A stretch of 64,000 nucleotides of DNA, from contig NIVC01001483.1 of NCBI GenBank assembly GCA_002269645.1, forward strand, positions 186,001 through 250,000, in the 5' to 3' direction. The position numbers were made by a program, and so were the translations under genes. Below the pieces are notes generated by a model. That model did no database searches. It was not told the DNA's origin and worked only from the letters and a program-made list of their open reading frames with translations. Of this stretch, positions 19,061 to 45,619 are shown one piece after another (position 1 is the stretch's first letter; each line of letters opens with the position of its first letter). The stretch comes from Macrostomum lignano. Taxonomy: Eukaryota.

Positions 19061-19664
19061 ATGGTAATTGGGGAAGCAAAAGGCAAACATAATGCTTAGT
19101 AACTATATGAAAAATAAGATGCATATTTCATGAAAAACACAGAATACGATGGCTTTAAGCTGAAAAATAGAAGGCAGCAAGAAGTTGTTGTGTAAGTCAG
19201 AATCCAGATATAAAAACATTCAGTCAGAAAAAATACATCTAATTGGCCAAGTTTGGAAGGCAAATTGTTTGAAAAAGGCATTCCTGATCACATAGCACTG
19301 CGCGATAAAAAGCGCGATAAAAATAAAAAAAATCGCCGAAACTTTAATTGGAAACTACACGAAGGGAATGAGGCTGAGTTTGTGAAGAGTAAAACGGCGC
19401 ACGCCAAAAATAACTAAAAAGAGAGCGTGTACACTGCTGGTACTACTAACGAAACTATAATCTATTCATTCATTTAGAGGAAACAAATTTTGGCAAAAAT
19501 ACGAATTGAGAACAGCTGTTGAGCATCAGGGTTGGGAAGAATCGAAATAAAAAGTCATAATCATAATTTCACTTAAAGCTAGGAATCTCAATTCTTAAGA
19601 AGCTTAATACTCATGCTAGGATAAATATAGTTCTTTACGTATAAAGCATATTTTTCATTCTAGG

Positions 19665-20330
19665 AATCCACAATGATCCTCATTCTAGGAATCCCAATCC
19701 CTCATTCTACGAGTAGGATTCCCAATCCATCATTCTAGGAATCCAAATCTCTCATTCTAGGAATCCCAATCCCGAATTCTAGGAATCCCGAATTCTCGTT
19801 CTAGGAATCCAAATCCCTCATTCTAGGAATCCAAATCCCTCATTCTAGGAATCTAAATCCCTCATTCTAGGAATCCAAATCCCTCATTCTAGGAATCCCA
19901 ATCCCTCATTCTAGGAATCCCGAATTCTCGTTCTAGGAATCCAAATCCCTCATTCTAGGAATCCAAATCCCTCATTCTAGGAATCCATATCCCTCATTCT
20001 AGGAACCCCAATCCTCAATCTAGGAATCACAATCTTCATTCTAGGAACCCCAAGCCTCATTCTAGGAATCCACAATGATCCTCAATCTAGGAATCCCAAT
20101 ACTGATTCCAGGAACACCAATCCTCATTCTAGGAACCCCAATCCTCATTCTAGGAACCCCAATACTGATTCTAGGAATCCCAAGCCTCATTGTAGAAATC
20201 ACAATCTTCATTCTAGGAATCCACCATGATCTTCATTTTAGGAATCCCAAGCCTCATTCTAGGAATCCCAATCCTCATTTTAGGAATCCCAAGCCTCTTT
20301 TCTAGGAATTCCTAATCTAGGAATTAAAGG
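19665..20330 (-). repeat. minisatellite family B array, inverted (ATCCCTCATTCTAGGAATCCC)n
   Basis: Reverse complement GGGATTCCTAGAATGAGGGAT matches family B. Confidence 0.85.
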
Positions 20331-20506: not shown

Positions 20507-21289
20507 TCAGCCCCAGCGCCTCAGACAGAACTTGGCACCGAACCACAGGACCGAACCGGCGGCAGCGCAGAAGGCGGTGTTCAGTGCGACGCTGCTCACA
20601 AAAATGGTTCGAGTTCGCTGTTGAAACTCGGCCGCATCGTTGACCCTGGGAAACGGCACCCCGGGCACAGGCACGCCCAGGAACTGGCACAGCGGCTCCC
20701 AGCCTTCGGCCACTCGAAACACCAACAGACGCTCCTTTGGAATGCTTCGAATAACGTCCTCAACGTGACGATCAAATATCCTGATAAGCTCTTCGTCAGT
20801 AGCGTCGAGGTCAAGTCGCAGTCGCTGATCGAACAGCACCTCCTTCAGCTTGACAATGTAGTACAGTCCAATCAGGTGAAGCAGTGGGGTCAGCACCATC
20901 TGGATCACCTTGGCTAGTCGCAGAACTGTGCCTCTCATGCTAGTTGCCCATCGTTTAGGATCGCGCACGCTCAGCACAAACCTCGCATCCGGATAGATCC
21001 TGGCCAAGTCTTTGTAGAACAGGCAAGCTGGAAAATCTGCGGTAGCTTGGAAACCGCAGAATATTTTGTCAGCCAATTCTCTGGTCAAGCCGTTAGTTGA
21101 GGCCTGGTACCACAGCTTCAGATGCGAACGATTCTCGTGTAGAATATAGTCCATATGGTAGCACCTGCCACCCAGCAGGATCTCGAATGCTTTCATCTGC
21201 GAATTGGTGCCAGTGCGCATCAGGCCTACACTGATCACCTGAAGATTGCTACGATCCGTGTCCTCAAACTGACGCCTAGTTGACGTCAT
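20507..21289 (-). CDS. Sulfotransfer_4/SmSULT-like sulfotransferase, copy 1 (260 aa, C-terminal TM)
   Basis: PAPS-binding loop VISVGLMRTGTNS, CYHM, TADFP, RDPKRW, RLLVFRVAEGWEPLCQFLGVPVP..FPRVND, and a hydrophobic tail. Confidence 0.9.
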   Translation of the reverse strand: MTSTRRQFEDTDRSNLQVISVGLMRTGTNSQMKAFEILLGGRCYHMDYILHENRSHLKLWYQASTNGLTRELADKIFCGFQATADFPACLFYKDLARIYPDARFVLSVRDPKRWATSMRGTVLRLAKVIQMVLTPLLHLIGLYYIVKLKEVLFDQRLRLDLDATDEELIRIFDRHVEDVIRSIPKERLLVFRVAEGWEPLCQFLGVPVPGVPFPRVNDAAEFQQRTRTIFVSSVALNTAFCAAAGSVLWFGAKFCLRRWG

Positions 21290-22597
21290 GCTCAGTCAGT
21301 TTGACTGGATGAGAAATCTGAAAGACAGGTTAAAACAGGTCTGTGATAACACTAGTAGATATTGTTCCTGTTTGGACTATAGCTTGTGTTGTTTTTGTTT
21401 TAATTTTCTGACTTCAAATCGAGTTCTAAGGAGTTGAGAACGGCAGAGTGCTCTCCAGAAATGATGCATTAATTAAAAGTCAAAATGTGAATATCCACAT
21501 AAAGAACAAAACAAGCTATACACATATACAATATTTGAGGTATTTTGTCAACTAGATGAACTTTAAACTTTGCTCAAAGGAGTCGGGTTTGAAGAATTGC
21601 CTCAAGAAGATCACAAAGGCGGTCATGGGTGCAAGAGCTGGACTCTGGGGGGAGAAAAGTATGGAGACACTCACAGAGTTTGAAATGAAATTTTACAGAA
21701 GAATGCCCACGGCCATGTCGGCATCTTATAAAATCTTACAACCTTGATAATACAATCGAATGCTCATTCTGTTGAGTTAAAAGCCCCGAATTCGAGCCAA
21801 CTACTCGTAGTTCCGATCGCTAGAGTTTGAACAGTAGTAGTAGTATATTAAGCTTTACACTAGACGTTTGTGCACTATGAAAATCAAAATCAAAATCAAA
21901 ATCAATTTAAAATAGTCTCGGAATATTCATAAGTTTATTTATCACAAATACAAGCTTCGTAAAAAAGGTTTATATAAATATATACGCTACTAATTCTATT
22001 GAGTGATTATTTATTTAGTACTAAAATTGATCTCAAAATTTAATAAAAAATCCAAATATACAAAATCCACTATACTAAAAATTATAAATCTAAATCACAA
22101 CCCATTGTCCTAGAATGCTTTAATCAAGATAAATTTGTGATATAAAAAAATCGATTTATCACAAAAGACCATTAAAACGTTCTACAGTGAAAGCAACAAG
22201 GTGTAAAACTTGGATTCAGCAATATTGAAAAGTCTCAATCTTTGCGAGTAACGCAACTCAGCTACGCCGCGACAGACTTGCGTTGAGGAATGAAGTGGGG
22301 GGAGCGGTGTGCGAGGGTTGGACGGATTACGAGAGCTACCCCAATCAGTTTTCTCGTAGATTTTATTTCAGAATAGTCCAAAGAGAAATCGCACTGGCGC
22401 ATAGAGTGGCGACTTTTCAATGTTGCTGAGTCTATTATTTAGAAGGCACCTTGTGATTGTCTAAAACTAAATAAAAAGTTGTAACGTCATATAATTCGAT
22501 GTCTAATATTGAGAAGACATAAAAGTGGTAACTCGCAGATTTCTTCCTGCTTTCCGTTTGATTTTATACTTGGCAGCCTGGAATTGAAACCTACAAG

Positions 22598-23359
22598 TCA
22601 AGAAGACCACAGCTGAAGACAGCGCTTAACACTGAACCAGACCGCAGCGCCAACAGCAGTACAGAAGGCCACATTCAGAACTGATCCGAAAAGTATAAAT
22701 GAACCAATTTTACGTTGAAATTCTTTGGTATCATTCACGCACGGGAATGGCACGTCCGGCACCGGTACATTCAAGAATTTGCACAACGGTTCCCAGCCGT
22801 CTGTGACTCTGAACACTAACAGGCGCTCCTTAGGAATAGTCCGAATCACGGCTTCAGTGTGCCGATCAAAAGCGACAGCAAGTTCCTGGTCAGACATGCC
22901 TTGATTCATTCCCATTCTAGGGAACATTGCAGTTTGCAATTTGTCCATGTAATTGAAGCCAATTAGCCAGGCTATTGGGGGCAGGATGTGTTTGCCAGCC
23001 GATTGGGCCTTGTAAACTGTAGCCCGGACACTCTGCACCCAGCCTTCGGGCTCGCGCAGGCTAAGAATAAATTTGGCTTCATGATAAATCTGCATCAACT
23101 CCGAATAGAAGTGAGCAGCTGGAAAGTCTGTGCAAGCTCGAAATTCGCTTAACATTTCGTCTGCGATTTCTTTTGTGAGACCTTCTGTAGCGGCTTTGAG
23201 CCACAGTTTCAAATGATGTCGCTTCTCCTCTATGATCACTTCCATATGGTAGCAGCGGCCGCCAAGCAGAATCTCTAGCGCCTTCATCTGCGAATTGGTG
23301 CCAGTTCGCATCAGGCCAGCGCCAATCACTATGGGGCCTGTTGAAGATTTCGATGCCAT
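22598..23359 (-). CDS. Sulfotransfer_4/SmSULT-like sulfotransferase, copy 2 (likely start MASKSS; in-frame ATG also at 23395)
   Basis: Same motifs (VIGAGLMRTGTNS, CTDFP, GWEPLCKFL) and N-terminal length matches the paralogs. Confidence 0.9.
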   Translation of the reverse strand: MASKSSTGPIVIGAGLMRTGTNSQMKALEILLGGRCYHMEVIIEEKRHHLKLWLKAATEGLTKEIADEMLSEFRACTDFPAAHFYSELMQIYHEAKFILSLREPEGWVQSVRATVYKAQSAGKHILPPIAWLIGFNYMDKLQTAMFPRMGMNQGMSDQELAVAFDRHTEAVIRTIPKERLLVFRVTDGWEPLCKFLNVPVPDVPFPCVNDTKEFQRKIGSFILFGSVLNVAFCTAVGAAVWFSVKRCLQLWSS

Positions 23360-23434
23360 GCAAAATAGCGTTGAATGCTTTGAGTTGTTAAACATGCTCT
23401 AGTCCCGTTAGCCAAGGCCAAGGCTAGCACAAAT

Positions 23435-25325
23435 TAGTGCTGGGGTCCTCAGTGTAGGATGAGGGTCATTGGTGCTGGGTCCTCAGTGTAGGATGTGGGT
23501 CATGGGTGCTGGGTCCTCAGTGTAGGATGTGGGTCATTGGTGTTGGTGTCCTCAGTGTAGGATGTGGGTCATTAGTGTTGGGTCCTCAGTGTAGGATGTG
23601 GGTCATTGGTGTTGGGTCCTCAGTGTAGGATTTGGGTCATTGGTGTTGGGGTCCTCAGTGTAGGATGTGGGTCATTGGTGTTGGGTCCTCAGTGTAGGAT
23701 GTGGGTCATTGGTGTTGGTGTCCTCAGTGTAGGATGTGGGTCATTGGTGCTGGGTCCTCAGTGTAGGATGTGGGTCATTGGTGTTGGTGTCCTCAGTGTA
23801 GGATGTGGGTCATTGGTGCTGGGTCCTCAGTGTAGGATGTGGGTCATTGGTGCTGGGTCCTCAGTGTAGGATGTGGGTCATTGGTGATTGGTGTTGGGTC
23901 CTCAGTGTAGGATGAGGGTCATTGGTGTTGGGGTCCTCAGTGTAGGATGTAGGTCATTAGTGTTGGGTCCTCAGTGTAGGATGTAGGTCATTAGTGTTGG
24001 GTCCTCAGTGTAGGATGAGGGTCATTGATGTTGGGGTCCTCAGTGTAGGATGAGGCTAATTGGTGTTGGGGTCCTCAGTGTAGGATGAGGCTAATTGGTG
24101 CTGGGGTCCTCAGTGTAGGATGAGGCTAATTGGTGTTGGGGTCCTCAGTGTAGGATGAGGCTAATTGGTGCTGGGGTCCTCAGTGTAGGATGAGGCTAAT
24201 TGGTGTTGGGGTCCTCAGTGTAGGATGAGGCTAATTGGTGTTGGGGTCCTCAGTGTAGGATGAGGCTAATTGGTGTTGGGGTCCTCAGTGTAGGATGTGG
24301 GTCATTGGTGTTGGGGTCCTCAGTGTAGGATGAGGCTAATTGGTGTTGGGGTCCTCAGTGTAGGATGAGGCTAATTGGTGTTGGGGTCCTCAGTGTAGGA
24401 TGAGGCTAATTGGTGTTGGGGTCCTCAGTGTAGGATGAGGGTCATTGGTGTTGGGGTCCTCAGTGTAGGATGAGGCTAATTGGTGTTGGGGTCCTCAGTG
24501 TAGGATGAGGCTAATTGGTGTTGGGGTCCTCAGTGTAGGATGAGGCTAATTGGTGTTGGGGTCCTCAGTGTAGGATGAGGCTAATTGGTGCTGGGGTCCT
24601 CAGTGTAGGATGAGGCTAATTGGTGTTGGGGTCCTCAGTGTAGGATGAGGCTAATTGGTGTTGGGGTCCTCAGTGTAGGATGAGGCTAATTGGTGTTGGG
24701 GTCCTCAGTGTAGGATGTGGGTCATTGGTGTTGGGTCCTCAGTGTAGGATGAGGCTAATTGGTGTTGGGGTCCTCAGTGTAGGATGAGGCTAATTGGTGT
24801 TGGGGTCCTCAGTGTAGGATGAGGCTAATTGGTGTTGGGGTCCTCAGTGTAGGATGAGGCTAATTGGTGTTGGGGTCCTCAGTGTAGGATGAGGCTAATT
24901 GGTGTTGGGGTCCTCAGTGTAGGATGAGGCTAATTGGTGTTGGGGTCCTCAGTGTAGGATGAGGCTAATTGGTGTTGGGGTCCTCAGTGTAGGATGAGGC
25001 TAATTGGTGTTGGGGTCCTCAGTGTAGGATGAGGCTAATTGGTGTTGGGGTCCTCAGTGTAGGATGAGGCTAATTGGTGTTGGGGTCCTCAGTGTAGGAT
25101 GAGGCTAATTGGTGTTGGGGTCCTCAGTGTAGGATGAGGCTAATTGGTGTTGGGGTCCTCAGTGTAGGATGAGGCTAATTGGTGTTGGGGTCCTCAGTGT
25201 AGGATGAGGCTAATTAGTGCTGGGGTCCTCAGTGTAGGATGAGGCTAATTGGTGTTGGGGTCCTCAGTGTAGGATGAGGCTAATTGGTGTTGGGGTCCTC
25301 AGTGTAGGATGTGGGTCATTAGTGT
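23435..25325. repeat. about 35-36-bp minisatellite (GGTCCTCAGTGTAGGATGAGGCTAATTGGTGTTGG)n
   Basis: Visible array with a gradient of variant units. Confidence 0.95.
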
Positions 25326-26298
25326 AGACTGTGGGCGCCTGCAAATTTCTTAACTACCCTAAAAGAAACAAAATTTAACAAGTTTAAAAAAGACTGCAAA
25401 TAAATATAATAAATAGTTTAATATATTGAACAGAGTGTCTATCTGTGTTAAAAGGTACGCTAAAAAACTCTCTGAATTAGATGGCATCATTAAAACAAAG
25501 TTGCTAAAATCAGTGAACCATGCATAAAAATAAGCTCACTCCATCAAACGAATTAAAAACAATTTGCTAAATAAATAAATATATAGAAGTTTGTGCGAGT
25601 CTAAAATAGAATCAATGATGAAGAACAGACTACAGACGAAAGAGTCTAAAAATCTTGTTAAACTTTAGCACAAAGACTAATCAAGCAAGGAATAGCAATT
25701 CTCTGTTGTCAGGACTAAAAAATCATGAATTCCACCTCTCTACAAAATTCCAAAATTATATAAAAACTTGGCATATGTAGCAGATAATTTATTTGATTCA
25801 TTAAATAGCCAATTAATTTGCAAACTCTAATTCATGGTCTGAGTCCAAATCGACAAAAAAAATTGTCAGATCGGCGTACTATAAACGTAGAGTCGAGACA
25901 CCCAAATCTAGGTAACTTTCTTTGAGCTTTAATGGAATATCAGACTAGCTTTGATAATTCTGTTATTTTGTTAAATCACCTTGACAATGAAACTGTGACC
26001 TGGAGTCATTTCATAGCACAATCTTTCTAACTTGTTTGTGCGATTGTCATCAAATGTAATCAACCAAACGCATATGAATCCTCTTATGTACATATTCAAT
26101 AACTCCACGACTCAAACTCTTCTCTTCTAGTATCACATAGTTTTTATCCGACTGTACCGGATTTCTACGTATCAAAATCAAAGTCTATCCAGATGGCGAA
26201 ACAACCTCGGACCCAGCGCAGGTTGGTTTCAAATCAAATCTTCTACAAGTCCTGAAGTTAAGGACGGAAACTTTAAGATAAATCGAAAGCCGCTTAAC

Positions 26299-27067
26299 TT
26301 AAAAATACTTTCTCAGGCAGTATTTGGCCCCAAACCAAGCAGCAGAGCCGACAGCGGCATAAAAGCCGGCATTGAGTACAACGCCAGCAACTCGAACAAT
26401 CTGAGTCCTGCGTCGGAACTGGTTCGTGTCGTTCACATTCGGAAACGGCACATCCGGCACGGGCAAGCCTAAGAACTTGCACAATGGCTCCCAACCGTCA
26501 GACACTTGGAATACCAACAGTCTGTCCTTAGGAATTGTCTGCTTGACAGCTTCAACGTGTCGTTCGTACGCAGCGATCATCTCTTGGTCGGACATGTCAA
26601 ACCGGAAGCCCAGACGCTGCTCAAGGATCAAGTCAATGACAGGTACAGAGGAAGACATGCCTAGGAGCCAATCTACTGGTTTCGGAATCTTCAGCTGTAC
26701 ACTTCTCAGCTCGGCAATGGTGCTGCGAACGCTTAAAACCCAACGTTTTGGATCTCGAATGCTGAGTACAAACTTTGCGTTGGGATAAATCTTCATCAAT
26801 TCTGGATAGAAGTGAGCAGCTGGAAAGTCTGTCGAAGCTCGAAAATCGCCCAGAATCTTTTCAGCAAGCTCTTTAGTTAAGCCTCCCTTGGCGGCCTGGT
26901 ACCAAAGCTTCAGATCATTTCTTCGCTCTTTCGCAATCACCTCCATATGGTAGCAGCGGCCGCCAAGCAGAATCTCCAGCGCCTTCATCTGCGAATTGGT
27001 GCCAGTTCGCATTAGGCCGGCGCCAATCACTACGGGGCCTATCTATTTTAACATCTCTGTTACACAT
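26299..27067 (-). pseudogene. Sulfotransferase copy 3, frameshifted near the N-terminus by a 4-bp ATAG duplication
   Basis: ATG TGT AAC AGA GAT GTT AAA ATAG ATAG GCC...; deleting one ATAG gives MCNRDVKIGPVVIGAGLMRTGT in frame with the otherwise intact 243-codon ORF. Confidence 0.7.
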
Positions 27068-27727
27068 TGTTACAGTCAGCTAAGAATGACAAAATAGATT
27101 CATAAAACCAATGAGTCGAGCCATGCCACGCTTTCTTATTTTTAAGAACTGGATGGACATGTAATAATTAGGCTAAAAATTAACATAGAACCTTAATCTC
27201 CTTAACTAAAAGCTTTATGAATACCAATAGAGCTATGAGAAAGGCAAAGCATATCAAAAGATGAACACTGGGCCTGCCTCCTATCAAAAGCAATAACACA
27301 TTTTTTTGCTAGAAAACGTCAAACCCTTACCTATCACTGTAATATATTTTGGTCGGTAACTGGTCGGTAATATTATATTATATTATATATAATGGTCAGT
27401 TACCGACACACTTATTGGGCTTTAACTTAGTGAAAAAAAGAGAAAGAAAACACCTAATGTGACAAAGTTATGTAAGGCAAATTTATTGAAATGGTAATAA
27501 AACTCGCAACAGGTCAGCTGTGCAAAAAATTTTCGCTGGTTAAAAAAATTTCGTTACATAATCTAAAATTGTTGTGAAATTTGTTAAAATTAAACAAAAT
27601 GAAAAGCGTTCAAATAAAACTACAAGAAAACTTTTTAAGAGAGTTCTTTTCAACCGTAAGTTTCGAAATCTATACTTTTGGCAATGTAAAATCACATTTA
27701 TTGAGAGTTGATAAACTAGCTTAAGAA

Positions 27728-29515
27728 GCCTTCTATTGTATAGGTCAAGCAAACCTACGCAGACAGCACTTCAGACCGAACCAGCAGCCTTCTATTGTAT
27801 AGGTCAAGCAAACCTACGCAGACAGCACTTCAGACCGAACCAGCAGCCTTCTATTGTATAGGTCAGGCAAACCTACGCAGACAGCACTTCAGACCGAACC
27901 AGCAGCCTTCTATTGTATAGGTCAGGCAAACCTACGCAGACAGCACTTCAGACCGAACCAGCAGCCTTCTATTGTATAGGTCAGGCAAACCTACGCAGAC
28001 AGCACTTCAGACCGAACCAGCAGCCTTCTATTGTATAGGTCAGGCAAACCTACGCAGACAGCACTTCAGACCGAACCAGCAGCCTTCTATTGTATAGGTC
28101 AGGCAAACCTACGCAGACAGCACTTCAGACCGAACCAGCAGCCTTCTATTGTATAGGTCAAGCAAACCTACGCAGACAGCACTTCAGACCGAACCAGCAG
28201 CCTTCTATTGTATAGGTCAGGCAAACCTACGCAGACAGCACTTCAGACCGAACCAGCAGCCTTCTATTGTATAGGTCAAGCAAACCTACGCAGACAGCAC
28301 TTCAGACCGAACCAGCAGCCTTCTATTGTATAGGTCAGGCAAACCTACGCAGACAGCACTTCAGACCGAACCAGCAGCCTTCTATTGTATAGGTCAAGCA
28401 AACCTACGCAGACAGCACTTCAGACCGAACCAGCAGCCTTCTATTGTATAGGTCAGGCAAACCTACGCAGACAGCACTTCAGACCGAACCAGCAGCCTTC
28501 TATTGTATAGGTCAGGCAAACCTACGCAGACAGCACTTCAGACCGAACCAGCAGCCTTCTATTGTATAGGTCAAGCAAACCTACGCAGACAGCACTTCAG
28601 ACCGAACCAGCAGCCTTCATATTGTATAGGTCAAGCAAACCTACGCAGACAGCACTTCAGACCGAACCAGCAGCCTTCTATTGTATAGGTCAAGCAAACC
28701 TACGCAGACAGCACTTCAGACCGAACCAGCAGCCTTCTATTGTATAGGTCAGGCAAACCTACGCAGACAGCACTTCAGACCGAACCAGCAGCCTTCTATT
28801 GTATAGGTCAGGCAAACCTACGCAGACAGCACTTCAGACCGAACCAGCAGCCTTCTATTGTATAGGTCAAGCAAACCTACGCAGACAGCACTTCAGACCG
28901 AACCAGCAGCCTTCTATTGTATAGGTCAAGCAAACCTACGCAGACAGCACTTCAGACCGAACCAGCAGCCTTCTATTGTATAGGTCAGGCAAACCTACGC
29001 AGACAGCACTTCAGACCGAACCAGCAGCCTTCTATTGTATAGGTCAAGCAAACCTACGCAGACAGCACTTCAGACCGAACCAGCAGCCTTCTATTGTATA
29101 GGTCAAGCAAACCTACGCAGACAGCACTTCAGACCGAACCAGCAGCCTTCTATTGTATAGGTCAGGCAAACCTACGCAGACAGCACTTCAGACCGAACCA
29201 GCAGCCTTCTATTGTATAGGTCAGGCAAACCTACGCAGACAGCACTTCAGACCGAACCAGCAGCCTTCTATTGTATAGGTCAAGCAAACCTACGCAGACA
29301 GCACTTCAGACCGAACCAGCAGCCTTCTATTGTATAGGTCAAGCAAACCTACGCAGACAGCACTTCAGACCGAACCAGCAGCCTTCTATTGTATAGGTCA
29401 GGCAAACCTACGCAGACAGCACTTCAGACCGAACCAGCAGCCTTCTATTGTATAGGTCAAGCAAACCTACGCAGACAGCACTTCAGACCGAACCAGCAGC
29501 CTTCTATTGTATAGG
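27728..29515. repeat. 59-bp minisatellite (about 30 units) derived from the 3' end of sulfotransferase copy 4
   Basis: The reverse complement of the unit reads TGG TTC GGT CTG AAG TGC TGT CTG CGT AGG TTT GCC TGA + CCTATACAATAGAAGGCT. Confidence 0.95.
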
Positions 29516-30292
29516 TCAGGCAAACCTACGGAGACAGCACTTCAGACCAAACCAGACAGCAAGGCCCACAGCCGAGCAAAAGCCGAAATTAGCGAGAGCG
29601 CCAATTGTGTAAAAGCCAATGATTATCTTCTGGAATTCAGCAGTATCATTCACATTTGGAAACGGTACATCGGGTACCGGCAGCTCCAGGAAGTTGCACA
29701 ATGGTTCCCAACCGTCCGAAACTCGAAACACTAACAGTCGCTCTTTGGGAATAGTTCGAATCACCGCCTCGGTGTGACGGTTAAACGCTTCAATCAATTC
29801 TTTGTCTGTCATGTCCACTCGAATACCCAATCGCGAGTCGAAGATGTTGTGATGCAAAGGCAGAAAGTAGGTCAGATTGAAAAGCCACAACGATGGGGCC
29901 AGCATACAACCCATAGCCTTCATACCCTTAAAGATGGTACTGCGAACGCTCTCAACCCATCGTTGGGAATCGCGAACGCTTAGCACAAACTTGGCATTGG
30001 GATAAATCTTGAGTAGCTCAGGATAGAAATGCGCTACAGGAAAGTCTGTTGTAGCAACAAAACCGTCAAAGATTTGGTCAGCCAGCTGTTTTGTTAAACC
30101 CTCTTTGGCAGCCTGATTCCACAGCTTCAAGTGGTGTCGCTTCTGTGTCATGATTACGGACATATGGTAGCACCGGCCGCCAAGCAGAATCTCTAGCGCC
30201 TTCATCTGCGAGTTGGTGCCAGTTCGCATCAGGCCAACACCAAACACCAATGGACCCGTAGTAGACTGTTGCAACTTGCTATCAAGAGACAT
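29516..30292 (-). CDS. Sulfotransfer_4/SmSULT-like sulfotransferase, copy 4 (258 aa)
   Basis: Family motifs intact, and near-identical to copy 5. Confidence 0.9.
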   Translation of the reverse strand: MSLDSKLQQSTTGPLVFGVGLMRTGTNSQMKALEILLGGRCYHMSVIMTQKRHHLKLWNQAAKEGLTKQLADQIFDGFVATTDFPVAHFYPELLKIYPNAKFVLSVRDSQRWVESVRSTIFKGMKAMGCMLAPSLWLFNLTYFLPLHHNIFDSRLGIRVDMTDKELIEAFNRHTEAVIRTIPKERLLVFRVSDGWEPLCNFLELPVPDVPFPNVNDTAEFQKIIIGFYTIGALANFGFCSAVGLAVWFGLKCCLRRFA

Positions 30293-30522
30293 TGCGCTTG
30301 CTTGTTGATGTCAGACAATAATAAAAAATGAAAACAGAAATTTGAGCGCAAAATTTACAGCGCTTAAGCTCTCGACAATTGCGTGACAGTGGGGGAGGGG
30401 GGTCGCAACTTCTTACACCGAGATTCGATTAGATAATAGCAACGTGTTGTTTCTATTTTATTTATTGCTTCTAAATATTTTTATAAAACTAACTTAAACT
30501 AACCAAAAACGTTTACCTAAAT

Positions 30523-31402
30523 CAGGGGTCGACAACCTTTTCAGAGCAAGGGCCAAAAGCCAAATTTTTCAAGGGCTCAGAGGGGCCAATAACATAAAGA
30601 AGTGAAAAACCACAGGTGCATCCACAGACTACCTAAGTGCCATTTAACTACTTTAACTTACTAATTGTTTATTTACTTAAGTAGTCTGTGGTTGTGTCAT
30701 GTCAGACTGAACAAACAATTTTTATTCTATTGATGATGATCAAAACCTTAATCTCATCCCAACCATTTCGCCAGGGGTCAGCGAAATGGGCGGCAACGCC
30801 TCCTCGCTGTTTCCGGACGCACGGAGCCCCTGCCCCTGCAGCTAAGTCAATTAAATCAACTCAACCATTGAGATCCCCCACCCCAAAACCTGTCCTATTC
30901 CTTCTGTTCTCAATCCAACTCCAATAAACACCCCCTTCTGGAAACATTCTGACTTGCAGTCATCTTTCCCCCACAGAAGGACAACACAAGATAGGTATGA
31001 GAAAGGTGAGATAGAAGGGGAAGAAATAGGTGGCCGTATACATGCGCAACCATCCTGATTTACACCAGCCGTGCGACTTACTTATGAAAGAAACCTAAAC
31101 AACAACTGACGTGATTTCTGTTAAACGGCAGGAGTAACTATGACTGTATTTGTGAAGGCTAAATGCTTCTCCATCTAGTTAATACTACATGTACGTGTGT
31201 ATTTCTTCGGATGGGCATTTTTGCGACTTACCTTGGCTGGGCCCCTCGTCAGCTGGTTAGGTGCTGCGCATGTACATGTATGAGGTGGACTGAAGTTTAG
31301 GGGGGTGGATACAACGCTAGATCACCGAGGACCTGGGGGGGGGGAGGATTGGAAGGCTTCGGGGCCGGATTTGGCCCTGGGACCGGAGGTTGCCGACCCC
31401 TG
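30523..31402. mobile_element. non-autonomous hAT (Charlie-like) element, 880 bp
   Basis: TIRs CAGGGGTCGACAACC / GGTTGCCGACCCCTG and a perfect 8-bp TSD ACCTAAAT (30515-30522, 31403-31410). Confidence 0.85.
31036..31282. mobile_element. diverged copy of the CATACATGCGCAAC-TIR MITE, nested in the hAT element
   Basis: Ends TATACATGCGCAAC / TGCGCATGTACATGTATG, internal similarity to 56185-56482, and TSD-like AGGTGGCC/AGGTGGAC. Confidence 0.65.
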
Positions 31403-32152
31403 ACCTAAATATAGGCCACAGAATTAAACTTTTTTACTTTCAAACGAAATTGCTTGAGCATATTAGTTGAGATATTAAGCCCTCGTAACTAACCAAGGCC
31501 AACTGTGCTTAATTCGCTAACACATGGAAAAACAAAACTTTAATAATGCAAAATGAGTGCTAGCTTAAAAAATAAGTAATGAAATAACAAAGATTAAAGA
31601 TACACGTTTTATTAGTTTTCATCAGTAATTACTTCCAGTAAACCATTAAGTAAATGAGTAAATAGTGACATATCTAGTGATACAGAAATGCGCTAATTAC
31701 TTGTATATTGTGGTTTCTTTGAAATTCTAAAATAAATTGTAATAAACACTATAAAGATTTTTCCACTTAAGACTAAAGTATTCTTGGTTTATGAGAATCT
31801 CGAAGGATAGTTTATGGGAGAACGAAAGGATGTTTAATAGGCGATTCTAAGATAAGAGGAAAAGGGTTCTCATACGTGCAAAAATATTGTATATAAAAAC
31901 GTTTAATGTAACAAAGTTATGCAATGCGAATTTATTTCAATTGTGATCACGAAAAGTTCATTGATTCAGATTTTTTTTGAGAAAAGCTGTGAAATTTGTT
32001 AAAAATAAAACTTATTGTAATTTAAACAACAAATTCTGCTCTAAAAACTCTCAGATAAAGCGTATCCATTAGGAACTTTTTTAACCACAAAGTCTTGTAG
32101 CATTATAAAATCGTGTTAACTGATAGTTAATTAACTAATACAGTATAGCTTA

Positions 32153-33781
32153 AGAAGCCTTCATATTGCATAGGTCAGGCAAACCTACGCAGACAGCACT
32201 TCAGACCGAACCAGCAGCCTTCATATTGTATAGGTCAGGCAAACCTACGCAGACAGCACTTCAGACCGAACCAGCAGCCTTCATATTGTATAGGTCAGGC
32301 AAACCTACGGAGACAGCACTTCAGACCGAACCAGCAGCCTTCATATTGTATAGGTCAGGCAAACCTACGGAGACAGCACTTCAGACCGAACCAGCAGCCT
32401 TCATATTGCTTAGGTCAAGCAAACCTACGCAGACAGCACTTCAGACCAAACCAGCAGCCTTCTATTGTATAGGTCAAGCAAACCTACGCAGACAGCACTT
32501 CAGACCGAACCAGCAGCCTTCTATTGTATAGGTCAGGCAAACCTACGCAGACAGCACTTCAGACCGAACCAGCAGCCTTCATATTGTATAGGTCAGGCAA
32601 ACCTACGCAGACAGCACTTCAGACCGAACCAGCAGCCTTCATATTGTATAGGTCAGGCAAACCTACGCAGACAGCACTTCAGACCCAACCAGCAGCCTTC
32701 ATATTGTATAGGTCAGGCAAACCTACGGAGACAGCACTTCAGACCGAACCAGCAGCCTTCATATTGTATAGGTCAGGCAAACCTACGGAGACAGCACTTC
32801 AGACCGAACCAGCAGCCTTCATATTGCTTAGGTCAAGCAAACCTACGCAGACAGCATTTCAGACCAAACCAGCAGCCTTCTATTGTATAGGTCAAGCAAA
32901 CCTACGCAGACAGCACTTCAGACCGAACCAGCAGCCTTCTATTGTATAGGTCAGGCAAACCTACGCAGACAGCACTTCAGACCGAACCAGCAGCCTTCAT
33001 ATTGTATAGGTCAGGCAAACCTACGCAGACAGCACTTCAGACCGAACCAGCAGCCTTCATATTGTATAGGTCAGGCAAACCTACGCAGACAGCACTTCAG
33101 ACCCAACCAGCAGCCTTCATATTGTATAGGTCAGGCAAACCTACGGAGACAGCACTTCAGACCGAACCAGCAGCCTTCATATTGTATAGGTCAGGCAAAC
33201 CTACGGAGACAGCACTTCAGACCGAACCAGCAGCCTTCATATTGCTTAGGTCAAGCAAACCTACGCAGACAGCACTTCAGACCGAACCAGCAGCCTTCTA
33301 TTGTATAGGTCAGGCAAACCTACGCAGACAGCACTTCAGACCGAACCAGCAGCCTTCTATTGTATAGGTCAGGCAAACCTACGCAGACAGCACTTCAGAC
33401 CGAACCAGCAGCCTTCTATTGTATAGGTCAAGCAAACCTACGCAGACAGCACTTCAGACCGAACCAGCAGCCTTCTATTGTATAGGTCAGGCAAACCTAC
33501 GCAGACAGCACTTCAGACCGAACCAGCAGCCTTCTATTGTATAGGTCAAGCAAACCTACGCAGACAGCACTTCAGACCGAACCAGCAGCCTTCTATTGTA
33601 TAGGTCAGGCAAACCTACGCAGACAGCACTTTACACCGAACCAGCAGCCTTCTATTGTATAGGTCAAGCAAACCTACGCAGACAGCACTTCACACCGAAC
33701 CAGCAGCCTTCTATTGTATAGGTCAAGCAAACCTACGCAGACAGCACTTAACACCGAACCAGCAGCCTTCTATTGTATAGG
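32153..33781. repeat. 59/60-bp minisatellite derived from the 3' end of sulfotransferase copy 5, with a 418-bp higher-order repeat
   Basis: Same unit as 27728-29515. The variant pattern recurs at a 418-nt offset (ORFs 32465/32883 and 32524/32942). Confidence 0.95.
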
Positions 33782-34558
33782 TCAAGCAAACCTACGGAGA
33801 CAGCACTTCAGACCAAACCAGACAGCAAGGCCCACAGCCGAGCAGAAGCCGAAATTAGCAAGAGCACTAATTGTGTAAAAGCCAATGGCTTTCTTCTGGA
33901 ATTCAGCAGTATCATTCACATTTGGAAACGGTACATCGGGTACCGGCAGCTCCAGGAAGTTGCACAATGGTTCCCAACCATCCGAAACTCGAAACACTAA
34001 CAGTCGCTCTTTGGGAATAGTTCGAATCACCGCCTCGGTGTGACGGTTAAACGCTTCAATCAATTCTTTGTCTGTCATGTCCACTCGAATACCCAATCGC
34101 GAGTCGAAGATGTTGTGATGCAACGGCAGAAAGTAGGTCAGATTGAGAAGCCACAACGATGGGGCCAGCATACAACCCATAGCCTTCATACCCTTAAAGA
34201 TGGTACTGCGAACGCTCTCAACCCATCGTTGGGGATCGCGAACGCTCAGCACGAACTTGGCATTGGGATAAATCTTGAGTAGCTCAGGATAGAAAGCCGC
34301 TACAGGAAAGTCTGTTGTAGCAACAAAACCGTCAAAGATTTGGTCAGCCAGCTGTTTTGTTAAACCCTCTTTGGCAGCCTGATTCCACAGCTTCAAGTGG
34401 TGTCGCTTCTGTTTCATGATTACGAACATATGGTAGCACCGGCCGCCAAGCAGAATCTCTAGCGCCTTCATCTGCGAGTTGGTGCCAGTTCGCATCAGGC
34501 CAACACCAAACACCAATGGACCCGTAGTGGACTGTTGCAACTTGCTATCAAGAGACAT
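33782..34558 (-). CDS. Sulfotransfer_4/SmSULT-like sulfotransferase, copy 5 (258 aa, start MSLDSK)
   Basis: Family motifs intact. Start chosen by identity with copy 4. Confidence 0.9.
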   Translation of the reverse strand: MSLDSKLQQSTTGPLVFGVGLMRTGTNSQMKALEILLGGRCYHMFVIMKQKRHHLKLWNQAAKEGLTKQLADQIFDGFVATTDFPVAAFYPELLKIYPNAKFVLSVRDPQRWVESVRSTIFKGMKAMGCMLAPSLWLLNLTYFLPLHHNIFDSRLGIRVDMTDKELIEAFNRHTEAVIRTIPKERLLVFRVSDGWEPLCNFLELPVPDVPFPNVNDTAEFQKKAIGFYTISALANFGFCSAVGLAVWFGLKCCLRRFA

Positions 34559-35634
34559 TGCGCTTGCTTGCGATTCAGTTGATGTTAAACAATAAAAAAC
34601 GATAGCATGAATTAGTGCGCAAAGGTTACGCTTAGCTCTGCGGCACTGTGGTGGTCGCAACTCAGCCACGGATACTAGAATAACTAGACTAGATTAGCCA
34701 CTCAGCAAATTTGCGTGTAAGCTACTTTCAGTTCAGTAGTAAGTTAAACTGAAGCATTTTAATGTAATTTCTAAAAGACAAGGTTTATTTATTGGCTCTT
34801 ACACCCCCAAGCTTAAACCCTCAAACTCCACACGGAACCTCTACCCCCGCCCCACCGCCCAATTTTTATTACCCTACTCGGTTGTTCCAATCTAAATCAG
34901 CCATGTACATTTCAGTGGCTAATGTACATTATGGCTGAACCAATTAGCAAGCTGTTTACGCCTGCAAGCTTTGGCTTCTAAACTTATCGAAGTCATTTCA
35001 GCTGCCATTATTTTTATAAAATAACGTACGTATTCTTTATTGCTACTGAACTGAAAGTAGAAAGCTGTTTTACCAAGTATATATGACTGAGTGGCCCATT
35101 TAGTTATTCTAGTATCTGTGCTCACACCCAAAAAATTAATTTTCAACTTTTGGAGATAAAAACGTTCAAGTACGAATGCACTCGTACCAGACTTTTCAAA
35201 ATCCATTTTTACTTTTATGAAGATTCTAAGATATACAGCTACATTTGAGCTGGGTGACGAACTTGCTTAAACCCTCGTAACTAACCAAGGCCAACTGTGC
35301 TTAACTTAATTCGCTAACACATGGAGGAACAAAACTTCAATGCAAAATGAGTGCTAGCTTGAAAAAAAATTAGCAAAGAAATAACAAACAGACTAAAGAT
35401 ACACGTTCTATTAGTTTCCATTAGTAACTAGAAATAAAATGGACACGCTGTACTTTTTTTGCAAATTGTAAACTAAAATAATAACAGTATAGAATGGTAT
35501 AATACCGTGACTAGGTATAGCAATGGAAATGAATAAATATTAACATATCTAGTGATAAAGAAATGCGCTAATTATATTGTGGTTTCTTTAAAATAGATTG
35601 TAACTATTCAGATTTTTACCGCGTAAAGTATTAT

Positions 35635-37990
35635 TGGTTATTGGGATATTCCTGAAGGATGGTTTATGGGATATTCCTGAAGGATGGTTTATGGGAGAAT
35701 CCTGAAGGATGGTTTATGGGAGATTTTTGAAGGATGATTTATGGGAGAATCCTGAAGGATGGTTTATGGGAGAATCCTGAAGGATGGTTTATGGGAGATT
35801 TTTGAAGGATGATTTATGGGAGAATCCTGAAGGATGGTTTATGGGAGATTTTTGAAGGATGATTTATGGGAGAATCCTGAAGGATGGTTTATGGGAGATT
35901 TTTGAAGGATGGTTTATGGGAGAATCCTGAAGGATGGTTTATGGGAGATTTTTGAAGGATGGTTTATGGGAGAATCCTGAAGGATGGTTTATGGGAGTTT
36001 TTTGAAGGATGGTTTATGGGAGATTTTTGAAGGATGGTTTATGGGAGAATCCTAAAGGATGGTTTATGGGATATTCCTGAAGGATGGTTTATGGGAGATT
36101 TTTGAAGGATGATTTATGGGAGAATCCTGAAGGATGGTTTATGGGAGATTTTTTAAGGATGGTTTATGGGAGAATCCTGAAGGATGGTTTATGGGAGATT
36201 TTTGAAGGATGATTTATGGGAGAATCCTGAAGGATGGTTTATGGGAGATTTTTGAAGGATGATTTATGGGAGAATCCTGAAGGATGGTTTATGGGAGATT
36301 TTTGAAGGATGGTTTATGGGAGAATCCTGAAGGATGGTTTATGGGAGTTTTTTGAAGGATGGTTTATGGGAGATTTTTTAAGGATGGTTTATGGGAGAAT
36401 CCTGAAGGATGGTTTATGGGAGATTTTTGAAGGATGGTTTATGGGAGATTTTTGAAGGATGGTTTATGGGAGATTTTTGAAGGATGGTTTATGGGAGAAT
36501 CCTGAAGGATGATTTATGGGAGAATCCTAAAGGATGGTTTATGGGAGATTTTTGAAGGATGGTTTATGGGAGATTTTTGAAGGATGATTTATGGGAGAAT
36601 CCTGAAGGATGGTTTATGGGAGATTTTTGAAGGATGATTTATGGGAGAATCCTGAAGGATGGTTTATGGGAGATTTTTGAAGGATGGTTTATGGGAGAAT
36701 CCTGAAGGATGGTTTATGGGAGATTTTTGAAGGATGGTTTATGGGATATTCCTGAAGGATGGTTTATGGGAGATTTTTGAAGGATGGTTTATGGGAGATT
36801 TTTGAAGGATGGTTTATGGGAGAATCCTGAAGGATGGTTTATGGGAGATTTTTGAAGGATGGTTTATGGGAGATTTTTGAAGGATGGTTTATGGGAGAAT
36901 CCTGAAGGATGATTTATGGGAGAATCCTAAAGGATGGTTTATGGGAGATTTTTGAAGGATGGTTTATGGGATATTCCTGAAGGATGGTTTATGGGAGAAT
37001 CCTGAAGGATGGTTTATGGGAGATTTTTGAAGGATGATTTATGGGAGAATCCTGAAGGATGATTTATGGGAGAATCCTAAAGGATGGTTTATGGGAGATT
37101 TTTGAAGGATGGTTTATGGGAGATTTTTGAAGGATGGTTTATGGGAGAATCCTAAAGGATGGTTTATGGGAGATTTTTGAAGGATGGTTTATGGGAGAAT
37201 CCTGAAGGATGGTTTATGGGAGATTTTTGAAGGATGGTTTATGGGAGATTTTTGAAGGATGATTTATGGGAGAATCCTGAAGGATGGTTTATGGGAGAAT
37301 CCTGAAGGATGGTTTATGGGAGATTTTTGAAGGATGGTTTATGGGAGAATCCTGAAGGATGGTTTATGGGAGATTTTTGAAGGATGGTTTATGGGAGATT
37401 TTTGAAGGATGATTTATGGGAGAATCCTAAAGGATGGTTTATGGGAGAATCCTGAAGGATGGTTTATGGGAGAATCCTGAAGGATGGTTTATGGGAGATT
37501 TTTGAAGGATGATTTATGGGAGAATCCTGAAGGATGATTTATGGGAGAATCCTAAAGGATGGTTTATGGGAGATTTTTGAAGGATGGTTTATGGGAGATT
37601 TTTGAAGGATGATTTATGGGAGAATCCTGAAGGATGGTTTATGGGAGATTTTTGAAGGATGATTTATGGGAGAATCCTGAAGGATGGTTTATGGGAGATT
37701 TTTGAAGGATGGTTTATGGGAGAATCCTGAAGGATGGTTTATGGGAGTTTTTTGAAGGATGGTTTATGGGATATTCCTGAAGGATGGTTTATGGGAGATT
37801 TTTGAAGGATGATTTATGGGAGAATCCTGAAGGATGGTTTATGGGAGATTTTTGAAGGATGGTTTATGGGATATTCCTGAAGGATGGTTTATGGGAGATT
37901 TTTGAAGGATGGTTTATGGGAGAATCCTAAAGGATGGTTTATGGGAGAATCCTGAAGGATGGTTTATGGGAGAATCATGAAGGATGACTT
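35635..37990. repeat. 25-bp minisatellite (GAAGGATGGTTTATGGGAGAATCCT / ...GAGATTTTT)n, about 2.35 kb
   Basis: Visible array of two alternating unit variants. Confidence 0.95.
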
Positions 37991-38077
37991 ATAGTAGATT
38001 CTTAAGCCGACAAAACCAACAAGAGGAGGCAATGCACTTAAGTCGTGAACTTATTGATAAAAAATATTTTGCAAATG

Positions 38078-38857
38078 TCAAACAAACCGGCGCAGAGCGA
38101 ACTTCAACCCAAACCAGACAATCGCCCCAGCAACCGAGCAGACAGCCAAATTAGTAGTGACACTGGCCATATCGATGAAGTGAGCAAAGAACACAAACTC
38201 ATTAGTGTCTTTAATATGCGGAAACGGTCGATCGGGCACAGGTACACCCAGGTAGCTGCACAGAGGCTCCCAACCATCGGTGACTCGATAGATCAACAGT
38301 CGATCTTTAGGAATCGTTCTTTGTACAGCTTCAGCATGCCGTTCAAAAGCAGCGGTCATCTCCGCTTCAGTCATGTCAAAATTGAACACGAATCTAGATT
38401 GAAATATAGCATCGTGTAACAGTTGGAAGTAGCTGAGATCCCACAGCCACCGAGTCAGAGGTAACATCCGGCCCACAGCTCGATAGACACGACCAATAGT
38501 CAGTTTCATGCTATTCGACCAACGCTTGGGATCGCGAAGGCTTAAAATGAACTTCGCCTCGGGATAAATCTGCGCCAACTCGGCGTAAAACATTGCCGTA
38601 GGAAAATCTGCTGCCGCAACAAAACCGTCAAATATTTGATCGGCTAGTTCTTTAGTCAGGCCCTGAGTAGCGGCTCTGTGCCACAGTTTGAAATGATCCC
38701 GCCTCTCAGACATTATCACCTGCATGTGATAGCAACGACCGTTTAGAAGTCTCTCCAAGGCTTTCATCTGCGAATTGGTGCCAGTTCGCATCAGACCTGT
38801 GCATATCACTTTTGGCCCACCCTGCGACTGCTCACTTTGAGTATCCGGTTCTGTCAT
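38078..38857 (-). CDS. Sulfotransfer_4/SmSULT-like sulfotransferase, copy 6 (259 aa)
   Basis: VICTGLMRTGTNS, CYHM, AADFP, RDPKRW, GWEPLCSYL, and a TM tail. Confidence 0.9.
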   Translation of the reverse strand: MTEPDTQSEQSQGGPKVICTGLMRTGTNSQMKALERLLNGRCYHMQVIMSERRDHFKLWHRAATQGLTKELADQIFDGFVAAADFPTAMFYAELAQIYPEAKFILSLRDPKRWSNSMKLTIGRVYRAVGRMLPLTRWLWDLSYFQLLHDAIFQSRFVFNFDMTEAEMTAAFERHAEAVQRTIPKDRLLIYRVTDGWEPLCSYLGVPVPDRPFPHIKDTNEFVFFAHFIDMASVTTNLAVCSVAGAIVWFGLKFALRRFV

Positions 38858-38989
38858 GAGTAGTTTCGATTTTTTTTGCTGGTCTGCTTTTGATTTGCTG
38901 AAATAGAGATTTATATATTGTTTAGGGAATTTTGTGAAGAAACAAAAAAGACCATCCTTTATGAATAAAAATAAATGGTAATTAGACTC

Positions 38990-39330
38990 TTGTAAGGAAT
39001 TAGATGAGACTGTTAGGGGGAATAAGAGACTCTTGATGGCGAATTAGAGGACACTTCTGAGGGGAATTAGAGGAGACTTTTGAGGAAAATTAGATGAGAA
39101 TCTTGAGGGGAATTAGATGACAATCTTTAGGGGAATTAGATGAGACTCTTGAGGGAAATTAGAAGACACTATTGATGGGAATTAGAGGAGACTCTTGAGA
39201 GGAATTAGAGGGCACTATTTAGGGGAATTAGAGAAGACTCTTAAGGAGAATTAAAAAGAGGCTTACAAGGGGAATTAGGAAACTTTCAAGGAGAATTAGA
39301 GGAAGCTCTTAAATGGAATTAGTGACTCTA
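38990..39330. repeat. degenerate about 24-bp repeat (GGGAATTAGAGGAGACTCTTGA)
   Basis: Recurring GGAATTAGA core. Confidence 0.75.
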
Positions 39331-39555
39331 GAGAGAAATTATAAATGTCCATTGATGAAAATCAGAGGATTGACATAGTGAAAATACTAAAATGTTTACA
39401 ATAATAAATCTCATATGGTATCGACGTGATAAAGGCTGTTGAAAAATTATTTATTCAAATAAATAATCAGTTAAGATTTAAAAACTCCTATCAATAACTA
39501 TAAAAATGAATAATTATTCCATTGAGTTAATTGCACAAAAATTCAATTGAGATTG

Positions 39556-40350
39556 CTAGCTCTGAGCACAGGTAGAGGACCGCAGCAAGTATTTAACACC
39601 AACCCAGACACCTCCAAAGACAGCTGAACAAACTGCTAAATTAAGCAGAGGCCCGACAATCTTGAGCCCGACAATTGTTTCTAAGAATCGTTTCGTATCG
39701 TTCAGATGAGGAAACGGTTCGTTCGAAGGCACGGGCAGCTCCAGGAACTTACACAACGGTTCCCAACCGTCTGACACTCGAAATACCAACAGTCTCTCCT
39801 TCGGTATGGTTCGAATCACTGTGTCATTGTGACGGTTAAACGCGTCGATCATTTCCGCATCAGACATGTCAAAATTGAAGCCCAAACGAGAGCCCAGCAC
39901 AGCGTCACTCAGAGGCAAGTAGTGAGACAGTCCCAGAAGCCATCGCACTGGCGGTAGCATGTACTCAACTGTCAGTTTAGACTGCAGAATGGTAGCCCGG
40001 ACACTTCTCACCCAATCGGTTGGATCGCGAATGCTCAGTACAAACTTGGCGTCAGGATAAATCTGCATCAATTCCTTGTAGAAGTGAGCAGCTGGAAAGT
40101 CTGTACAAGCCAGAAAGTCGTCAAATATTTCCTCAGCCAATTCTTTGCTCAAGCCTTGGATAGCAGCTCGATGCCACAGCTGCAGATGTGACAGCTTCTC
40201 TTCCATCACAATGTCCATATGATAGCAGCGGCCGCCAAGCAGCATCTCCAGCGCCTTCATCTGCGAATTGGTGCCAGTTCGCATCAGGCCAGCGCCAATC
40301 ACACGAAGACCAGCTGAAGATTTGTTTTTCCTACTAGCAGCAGAAGACAT
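39556..40350 (-). CDS. Sulfotransfer_4/SmSULT-like sulfotransferase, copy 7 (264 aa)
   Basis: RVIGAGLMRTGTNS, CTDFP, RDPTDW, GWEPLCKFL, and a TM tail. Confidence 0.9.
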   Translation of the reverse strand: MSSAASRKNKSSAGLRVIGAGLMRTGTNSQMKALEMLLGGRCYHMDIVMEEKLSHLQLWHRAAIQGLSKELAEEIFDDFLACTDFPAAHFYKELMQIYPDAKFVLSIRDPTDWVRSVRATILQSKLTVEYMLPPVRWLLGLSHYLPLSDAVLGSRLGFNFDMSDAEMIDAFNRHNDTVIRTIPKERLLVFRVSDGWEPLCKFLELPVPSNEPFPHLNDTKRFLETIVGLKIVGPLLNLAVCSAVFGGVWVGVKYLLRSSTCAQS

Positions 40351-45547: not shown

Positions 45548-45619
45548 GTTCTTGCTGTTGACTAAAGCACAATTTAACAATTAATTTCTTTTAAATATAG
45601 GCGATAACTCGCATAAATG

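Follow-up and report, generated by a model that had tools for sequence, protein, structure and literature searches.

A Macrostomum-specific tandem expansion of PF17784 sulfotransferase genes with predicted C-terminal anchors

What kind of enzyme is encoded by a run of seven closely packed, intronless paralogues, where in the cell would it act, and are all of the copies working genes? These questions are raised by a 64,000-nucleotide stretch of the genome of the flatworm Macrostomum lignano (assembly GCA_002269645.1, contig NIVC01001483.1, positions 186,001 to 250,000; hereafter the window, in whose own numbering features are given). A reading of the sequence alone (the original prediction) had described seven same-strand paralogues within about 20 kb as tail-anchored sulfotransferases of the type that activates oxamniquine in Schistosoma mansoni (SmSULT-OR). 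Listing of the open reading frames (ORFs) over 19-42 kb confirmed the arrangement: seven minus-strand ORFs of 243-265 codons, here named g1 to g7, lie at 20507-40350, and a tblastn search of the whole 64-kb window revealed neither an eighth copy nor a fragment of one. We consider it probable that the array represents a Macrostomum-specific tandem expansion of single-exon PF17784 enzymes, that is, small-molecule sulfotransferases dependent on 3′-phosphoadenosine 5′-phosphosulfate (PAPS), anchored by their C-termini and diversified in their acceptor pockets. From its sequence, the array is best read as six functional genes and one decaying gene (g3).

The family and the fold were established by three types of comparison. 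All seven proteins matched PF17784 (Sulfotransfer_4) in a profile hidden Markov model (HMM) search, with 206-216 bits (E 8e-61 to 8e-64; gathering threshold 22.8 bits) and coverage of model positions 1-215 or 2-215. Since the model was covered whole and without interruption, the domain of each gene lies in a single exon; the neighbouring NDUFV1 gene has an intron, and the intronless state is therefore a trait of the array genes and not of the genome. The closest solved structures identified by phmmer were Cpz8 (4e-37), SgdX2 (8e-34) and the SULT-ORs of S. haematobium, S. japonicum and S. mansoni (~1e-33). When an AlphaFold2 model of g4 (predicted local distance difference test, pLDDT, 92.7; predicted template modelling score, pTM, 0.86) was compared with the PDB using Foldseek, the top 19 matches were all SULT-OR, Cpz8 or SgdX2 (E 1e-16 to 2e-14), with template modelling (TM) scores of 0.70-0.73 against the SULT-ORs (E ~1e-16) and a TMt of 0.86-0.88 against Cpz8; the next family, tyrosylprotein sulfotransferase (TPST), appeared only at 1e-4. 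The HMM, phmmer and Foldseek searches thus all place the proteins in the SmSULT-OR family, and none of them preferred another P-loop family. PF17784 is large, since an exhaustive HMM search matched 13,186 cluster representatives at E<=1e-3. Orthology with SULT-OR itself was not supported, given an identity of ~30%, a separate M. lignano clade and the lack of resolution at the deep nodes of the tree.

In order to compare individual residues, SmSULT-OR residues 2-229 were taken from a PDB alignment (its register being checked by the F39Y mutant) and then aligned with the seven proteins. The equivalents of R17, T20, C35, H37, D91, R115, W120, S123, G206 and P225 are invariant in all seven, including the GLMRTGT loop (R17 and T20), the SxRD..W..S motif (R115, W120 and S123) and the Asp of the DFP motif (D91). 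The alignment contains 80 invariant columns, among them GLMRTGTNSQMKA, CYHM, DFP and GWEPLC, so that both the shared blocks and the conservation of R17, C35 and D91 were read correctly from the sequence. By analogy with the general SULT motif, the R115 and S123 equivalents would form the 3′-phosphate site. The functional weight of such positions is known from SmSULT-OR, in which activation is lost with C35R or E142del and W120R fails to fold (PMC6834289), while D91 forms a hydrogen bond with the accepting hydroxyl, and D144 and T157 bind oxamniquine (PMC4618941). The PAPS loop, on the other hand, is not unusual, contrary to what had been claimed. In a survey of 144 homologues, GLMRTGT was present in 29 of the 104 with a recognisable loop (carriers are Paragonimus, Fasciola, Echinostoma, Opisthorchis, Hymenolepis, Mesocestoides and several fungi); the corresponding residues are GLP or GLS in Schistosoma, and in bacteria the M is mostly replaced by G. 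GLMRTGT is therefore normal for non-schistosome flatworms and occurs in several fungi as well.

The picture is reversed on the acceptor side. Among the internal segments, the middle region (g4 residues ~114-160) varies most, the majority fraction being ~0.5 compared to 0.8-0.96 in its flanks. In SmSULT-OR the hydrophobic pocket is formed by F39, I42, F43, L147, L236 and L256, and its opening by P134, E141, Y154 and E158 (PMC7454593). Ten acceptor-side positions could be aligned (F39, I42, F43, P134, E141, D144, L147, Y154, T157 and E158). Counted over six non-redundant paralogues, these carry a mean of 4.2 residue types versus 2.23 at the other 198 columns (Mann-Whitney p=5e-6), and the core positions one type each. 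Across the seven copies the equivalents of F39 are D/E/E/S/F/Q/D, those of D144 L/A/D/L/L/R/R and those of T157 K/Q/I/H/H/H/S; the oxamniquine-contacting residues F39, D144 and T157, which orthologues would be expected to share, are not kept across the array. The divergent acceptor-binding region of the original prediction was thus not only found but narrowed down to the pocket itself. In the g4/g5 pair, three of the five replacements in the aligned domain fall on pocket sites (equivalents of F39, F43 and L147; hypergeometric p=8e-4), which, although the numbers are small, is suggestive of functional divergence after duplication.

The copies are for the most part not recent. With the exception of g4/g5, their pairwise amino-acid identity is 48-62%, synonymous divergence (dS) is saturated (1.1 to >3) and the ratio of non-synonymous to synonymous divergence (dN/dS) is 0.11-0.32, which demonstrates purifying selection. 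The copies are therefore old and selectively maintained, and most of them are not assembly duplicates. The exceptional pair, g4 and g5, shares 97% of its amino acids (dS 0.05; eight synonymous and eight non-synonymous codon differences); here the explanation as an assembly duplicate was rejected because g4 has an upstream sequence of its own. A neighbour-joining tree with 32 homologues, built on Kimura-corrected p-distances, recovered the array as a single clade in all of its 200 bootstraps, as expected for the lineage-specific expansion that had been proposed; relations among the flatworm, fungal and bacterial groups were not resolved. Horizontal transfer from bacteria was also considered, as some bacterial or metagenomic matches are 42-46% identical, slightly above other flatworms. 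This origin is supported neither by the GLMRTGT loop and tail architecture, which are shared with flatworms, nor by the unresolved tree.

The second part of the question concerns the C-terminus. According to hydropathy, hydrophobic moment and the AlphaFold2 model, every copy ends, as originally described, in a hydrophobic helix and a basic tail. A run of 22-28 uncharged residues (grand average of hydropathy, GRAVY, 1.4-1.9; mean Eisenberg hydrophobicity 0.5-0.7; hydrophobic moment 0.07-0.28) is followed by 8-12 residues with a net charge of +2 or +3 (KFCLRRWG in g1), and in the model of g4 residues 217-257 form one unbroken straight helix of 41 residues. The low moment combined with high hydrophobicity is a transmembrane-like rather than an amphipathic pattern. 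Under the published tail-anchor rules (PMC5450235), a moderately hydrophobic transmembrane domain (TMD) with a +2/+3 tail falls between the endoplasmic reticulum and mitochondrial classes. A Cys directly follows the predicted TMD in g1-g5 (KFC, KRC, KYC, KCC) and is a possible palmitoylation site. Judged by hydropathy only, the N-termini are hydrophilic, and the best 19-residue Kyte-Doolittle (KD) window outside the tail does not exceed 1.4 in g2-g7; only g1 has a second strongly hydrophobic stretch (residues 128-146, ~20852-20908; VIQMVLTPLLHLIGLYYIV, KD 1.84), located in the variable pocket-forming region.

The same helix could in principle serve a soluble enzyme, by folding back as a lid or floor of the pocket (like alpha11 and alpha12 of SmSULT-OR) or by oligomerising. 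L236 and L256 in the C-terminal helices of SmSULT-OR do line the pocket (PMC7454593), Foldseek aligns 237-248 columns of the 258-residue model to SULT-ORs, so that at least the start of the helix equals the lid, and the hydrophobic run contains an invariant Asn and many Gly, Ala and Ser residues. We nevertheless regard a soluble enzyme as quite unlikely. The tails of four schistosome paralogues (32-34 residues; hydrophobic moment 0.26-0.43) are amphipathic: three have 11 charged residues (11 of 32) and uncharged runs of at most 5 (4-5), and the fourth, from S. mattheei, is less charged (7 residues) and contains an uncharged run of 16, whereas the M. lignano tail is ~14 residues longer, with an uncharged run of 22-28, low moment and high hydrophobicity. 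The modelled helix is straight over its 41 residues and not a helix-turn-helix, and the homologues of parasitic flatworms possess both elements at once, an amphipathic lid segment plus a terminal hydrophobic segment. These features favour a tail anchor over a structure that is a pocket lid only, with the first turns of the helix probably playing the lid role.

Is the anchor peculiar to Macrostomum, as had been proposed? It is not. A TM-like (here, transmembrane-like) tail was found in 56 of 67 homologues of >=240 residues in a word-indexed search, and, when the top 150 proteins of the exhaustive search were considered, in 106 of the 139 that could be scored; the query profile of the latter search included the tail and so biased the ranking. 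Its carriers include trematodes, cestodes and fungi, and the soluble, tail-less schistosome enzymes are the exception. Because both are widespread in these surveys, the tail and the GLMRTGT loop are family traits of the non-schistosome eukaryotic members. On the sequence evidence, the lineage-specific part is the seven-fold expansion, together with a shortened linker between domain and helix.

Taken together, the preferred reading implies the following mechanism. An N-terminal catalytic domain of ~215 residues would bind PAPS via the GLMRTGT loop and the SxRD...W..S motif, and the DFP Asp (D91 equivalent) would contact the acceptor hydroxyl. One long helix would follow directly, its last 22-28 uncharged residues and +2/+3 tail acting as a tail anchor that may keep the enzyme at a lipid surface or at an organelle membrane, on its cytosolic side, with the acceptor pocket beside the bilayer; the arrangement would suit lipophilic acceptors. 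The paralogues would keep the cofactor machinery fixed and differ at acceptor-pocket positions (as mapped in SmSULT-OR). The array is most likely a panel of substrate specificities, serving detoxification or the sulfation of lipids or signal molecules, while the particular substrates put forward originally (lipophilic hormones, xenobiotics, prey or algal toxins) are pure speculation.

Several points weigh against this reading. The pocket could be hypervariable because constraint on it is relaxed, and not because new specificities were selected; site-wise selection tests are impossible because dS is saturated, and the pocket enrichment in g4/g5 consists of three of five substitutions. Residues 39-43 of SmSULT-OR are aligned with more certainty than residues 134-158, where the alignment has a gap. 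The transmembrane call comes from hydropathy and moment calculations, not from a trained predictor, the C-terminal helices of SmSULT-OR line the pocket with L236 and L256, and part of the hydrophobic segment may, by analogy, pack on the domain. Finally, an older report of a cestode without sulfate activation, cited in PMC11812014, bears on the supply of PAPS in this worm.

The proteins may also have the sulfotransferase fold but serve mainly other ends than conjugation of xenobiotics, either (i) as regulators of lipid droplets or organelles, or (ii) as "activating" sulfotransferases of endogenous biosynthesis, in which, as with SgdX2 and Cpz8, the sulfate is put on as a leaving group or donor. 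Two PF17784 proteins, LdrG and LdrH, were recovered as lipid-droplet regulators; the title of PDB entry 8y9p reads "bacterial activating sulfotransferase SgdX2"; Cpz8 works in caprazamycin biosynthesis; and the physiological role of SmSULT-OR itself is unknown (PMC6834289). We consider this unlikely for the array, since expansion to seven copies with diversified pockets would be expected of enzymes with varied substrates more than of one step in a pathway or of a structural role, and the neighbouring genes (TAFII28, mitochondrial L35, NDUFV1 and lipoxygenase) include no biosynthetic genes.

A further-reaching version of the preferred reading is possible but should be regarded as tentative. The tail-anchored form of PF17784 would be the ancestral and dominant one in eukaryotes, and its members interfacial sulfotransferases whose lid runs into the membrane helix and which take lipophilic acceptors directly from a membrane or lipid droplet; the array would in that case represent a diversified set of such enzymes, whose pocket residues came under positive selection once a gene had been duplicated (g4 versus g5), and the soluble schistosome SULT-OR would be derived by loss of the anchor. 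If this were true, sterols, oxylipins and lipid-soluble toxins would be the acceptors, and the proteins would constitute a membrane-bound class of small-molecule sulfotransferases distinct from cytosolic SULTs and from Golgi type-II enzymes.

The third part of the question, whether all copies are working genes, could be addressed by comparing alleles. Two more versions of the locus, with ~94-95% DNA identity to the window, are present in the same assembly, on NIVC01002094.1 (L001) and NIVC01001518.1 (L003). Several versions of one locus are what a hidden polyploid would be expected to show (PMC10468722). Both additional contigs contain g5, a satellite, g3, g2 and g1 but no g4, and L001, the only one reaching that far, also contains g6. 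The g5 protein is 100% identical on all three contigs, whereas g4 occurs only on NIVC01001483.1. The match between g4 and g5 comprises the coding region and ~80 bp upstream of it, the next 1.8 kb upstream being largely unrelated; this difference marks g4 as a structural duplicate confined to this contig, and not as the result of a haplotype mis-join.

In the case of g3 (26299-27030, minus strand, 243 codons) the number of seven genes has to be qualified: the other six ORFs are intact, but g3 as written in the window has a GTG start with an in-frame TAG four codons upstream and no ATG. Its 5′ end is replaced from ~27041; compared with the g3 of L001, which has an ATG-bearing 5′ end (MSNMLRAGAPQEQAASGPV...), the g3 copies of the window and L003 lose homology 11 nt before the GTG. 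In L001 and L003, a TGA replaces the invariant Arg of YERH (CGA>TGA). Every allele therefore carries at least one lesion. The two independent lesions are distributed in a recombinant-like pattern, L003 having both (window 26299-27041; L001 7945-8721; L003 5061-5789). On this evidence, g3 is a probable pseudogene or null allele. As the M. lignano spliced leader (SL) ends in ATG and prefers the acceptor [T/C]TNCAG (PMC8629364), rescue of g3 by trans-splicing was considered. It is unlikely: although the TAG/ATAGGCCCC junction is in frame, the acceptor is TAG and not [T/C]TNCAG, and L003, with an identical 5′ structure, has the nonsense codon too. The g2 allele of L003 has a 1-bp deletion just before the tail, which may be a sequencing error.

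The array thus appears to be turning over, g4 being young and confined to one contig and g3 being lost; the proposed birth-and-death evolution fits the presence of g4 on one of three contigs, the g3 lesions in all three and the frameshifted g2 in one. The same facts (g3 damaged on all three contigs, g2 frameshifted on one, g4 missing from two of three), in an assembly that is repeat-rich and long-read based, could be taken to mean that the locus is redundant, decaying DNA of a hidden polyploid, with no current function and with copy-number differences that are assembly artefacts. This is highly improbable: six of the seven ORFs are intact despite saturated dS, dN/dS is 0.11-0.32, the 80 invariant columns include all cofactor and catalytic residues, and g4 and g5 have unrelated upstream sequences, which speaks against a haplotype mis-join.

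A further feature of the locus is found downstream of the duplicated pair. The unit of a 59/60-bp satellite corresponds to the last 13 codons (WFGLKCCLRRFA) plus the stop codon and ~20 nt of 3′ flank of the gene, so that 28-31 in-frame pseudo-C-termini trail g4 and g5 each. The minus-strand array of 59-bp units (27727-29560, 31 copies) adjoins g4, and that of 60-bp units (32156-33826, 28 copies, minus strand), gene-derived like the former, adjoins g5 and belongs to the g4/g5 duplication unit. The gene-3′-end satellite is present on all three contigs in differing copy numbers (L001 3872-6689).

The remaining genes, all on the minus strand, are g1 (20507-21289; a 260-aa PF17784 sulfotransferase with its PAPS loop at 21188-21226 and predicted TMD at 20534-20608), g2 (22598-23395; a 265-aa PF17784 sulfotransferase, predicted TMD 22628-22708), the recent g5 duplicate g4 (29516-30292; 258 aa, predicted TMD 29543-29626), g5 itself (33782-34558; 258 aa, predicted TMD 33809-33889; its mechanical ORF runs on to a GTG at 34669), g6 (38078-38857; a 259-aa PF17784 sulfotransferase, predicted TMD 38105-38170) and g7 (39556-40350; a 264-aa PF17784 sulfotransferase, predicted TMD 39595-39660). 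Spacers between array genes measure 0.7-3.5 kb and are mostly filled with satellites. A [T/C]TNCAG motif lies 30-50 nt upstream of the ATG of g1 (21289), g6 (38857) and g7 (40350), i.e. at three of seven start codons, which hints at SL trans-splicing of these genes. The array genes are already deposited as "hypothetical protein BOX15_Mlig...", and a literature search found no publication on Macrostomum sulfotransferases or on these genes.

The array has TAFII28 and mitochondrial L35 as neighbours on one side, and the intron-containing NDUFV1 and a lipoxygenase gene on the other. Between two exons of NDUFV1 (complex I 51 kDa; 43443-43979, 44084-44969 and 44999-45580, minus strand) lies an intron that is almost wholly a 24-28-bp satellite. 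The lipoxygenase gene, ~12 kb upstream of the array (52398-53234 and 54102-55310, minus strand), encodes PLAT and lipoxygenase domains. The products of such enzymes are hydroxy and hydroperoxy fatty acids; it is conceivable that these are sulfotransferase acceptors, and the proximity may be coincidental. The window is extremely rich in satellites at 1-20000 and 42000-55000, where there are dozens of arrays with 12-89-bp units; a 28-bp unit at 11126-12764 recurs inverted at 8626-9011 and 51643-52320. Strand asymmetry is strong, with a GC skew of up to 0.79 at 36-38 kb. A scan for bacterial promoters and terminators showed nothing, bacterial models being irrelevant for eukaryotic DNA.

PF17784 is a known and widespread family, of which the array is a Macrostomum-specific expansion. 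M. lignano is a free-living flatworm amenable to transgenesis, with RNA interference and in situ tools, and its compact array, in which six paralogues appear to be functional and share the same cofactor site while their pockets differ, offers a natural series for studying the role of the enzyme and its acceptor specificity. In the close relatives surveyed a membrane-type tail is the norm, whereas the schistosome enzymes are without it; this distribution bears on the site of the enzyme in Fasciola, Paragonimus, Opisthorchis and cestodes, and hence on sulfation-activated prodrugs in these parasites. The locus also illustrates, clearly and on a small scale, how genes arise and are lost among the haplotypes or homeologues of a hidden polyploid.

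Among known systems, SmSULT-OR (Smp_089320; PDB 4MUA, 4MUB, 5TIV, 5TIZ) is likewise a PF17784 protein of the same fold and a flatworm PAPS-dependent small-molecule sulfotransferase. At ~30% overall identity, it agrees with the array at the R17, C35, H37, D91, R115, W120 and S123 equivalents; it differs in its pocket residues, its loop (GLPRTGT versus GLMRTGT), an insertion of 14 residues that follows helix 3 and a C-terminus that is short, charged and amphipathic, the schistosome enzyme being soluble where the array proteins have an uncharged helix and a basic tail. The best sequence matches among solved structures are the Streptomyces proteins Cpz8 (PDB 9KF1, 9KF2) and SgdX2 (PDB 8Y9P), with 38-40% identity and a TMt of 0.86-0.88. 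Both are PAPS-dependent, and a structure of Cpz8 with 3′-phosphoadenosine 5′-phosphate (PAP) exists; unlike the array proteins, they are bacterial, of ~200-256 residues, without a hydrophobic tail, and belong to antibiotic or secondary-metabolite pathways.

The closest architecture is that of the tail-bearing PF17784 proteins of Paragonimus, Fasciola, Opisthorchis, Hymenolepis, Mesocestoides and fungi. These uncharacterised relatives, 37-42% identical to the array, have in common with it a full PF17784 domain, a hydrophobic helix at the extreme C-terminus and, in the flatworms and some fungi, GLMRTGT; in the proteins of parasitic flatworms the hydrophobic helix is preceded by a charged amphipathic segment of ~22 residues, most of which M. 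lignano lacks. In Aspergillus oryzae, the PF17784 proteins LdrG and LdrH were shown by experiment to localise to lipid droplets via helices (bioRxiv 10.1101/2022.11.24.517872). Like the array genes they are eukaryotic PF17784 duplication paralogues; their binding is ascribed to amphipathic helices, unlike the predicted terminal transmembrane helix of the array. By analogy, LdrG and LdrH may be taken as an experimental precedent for lipid-surface association within PF17784.

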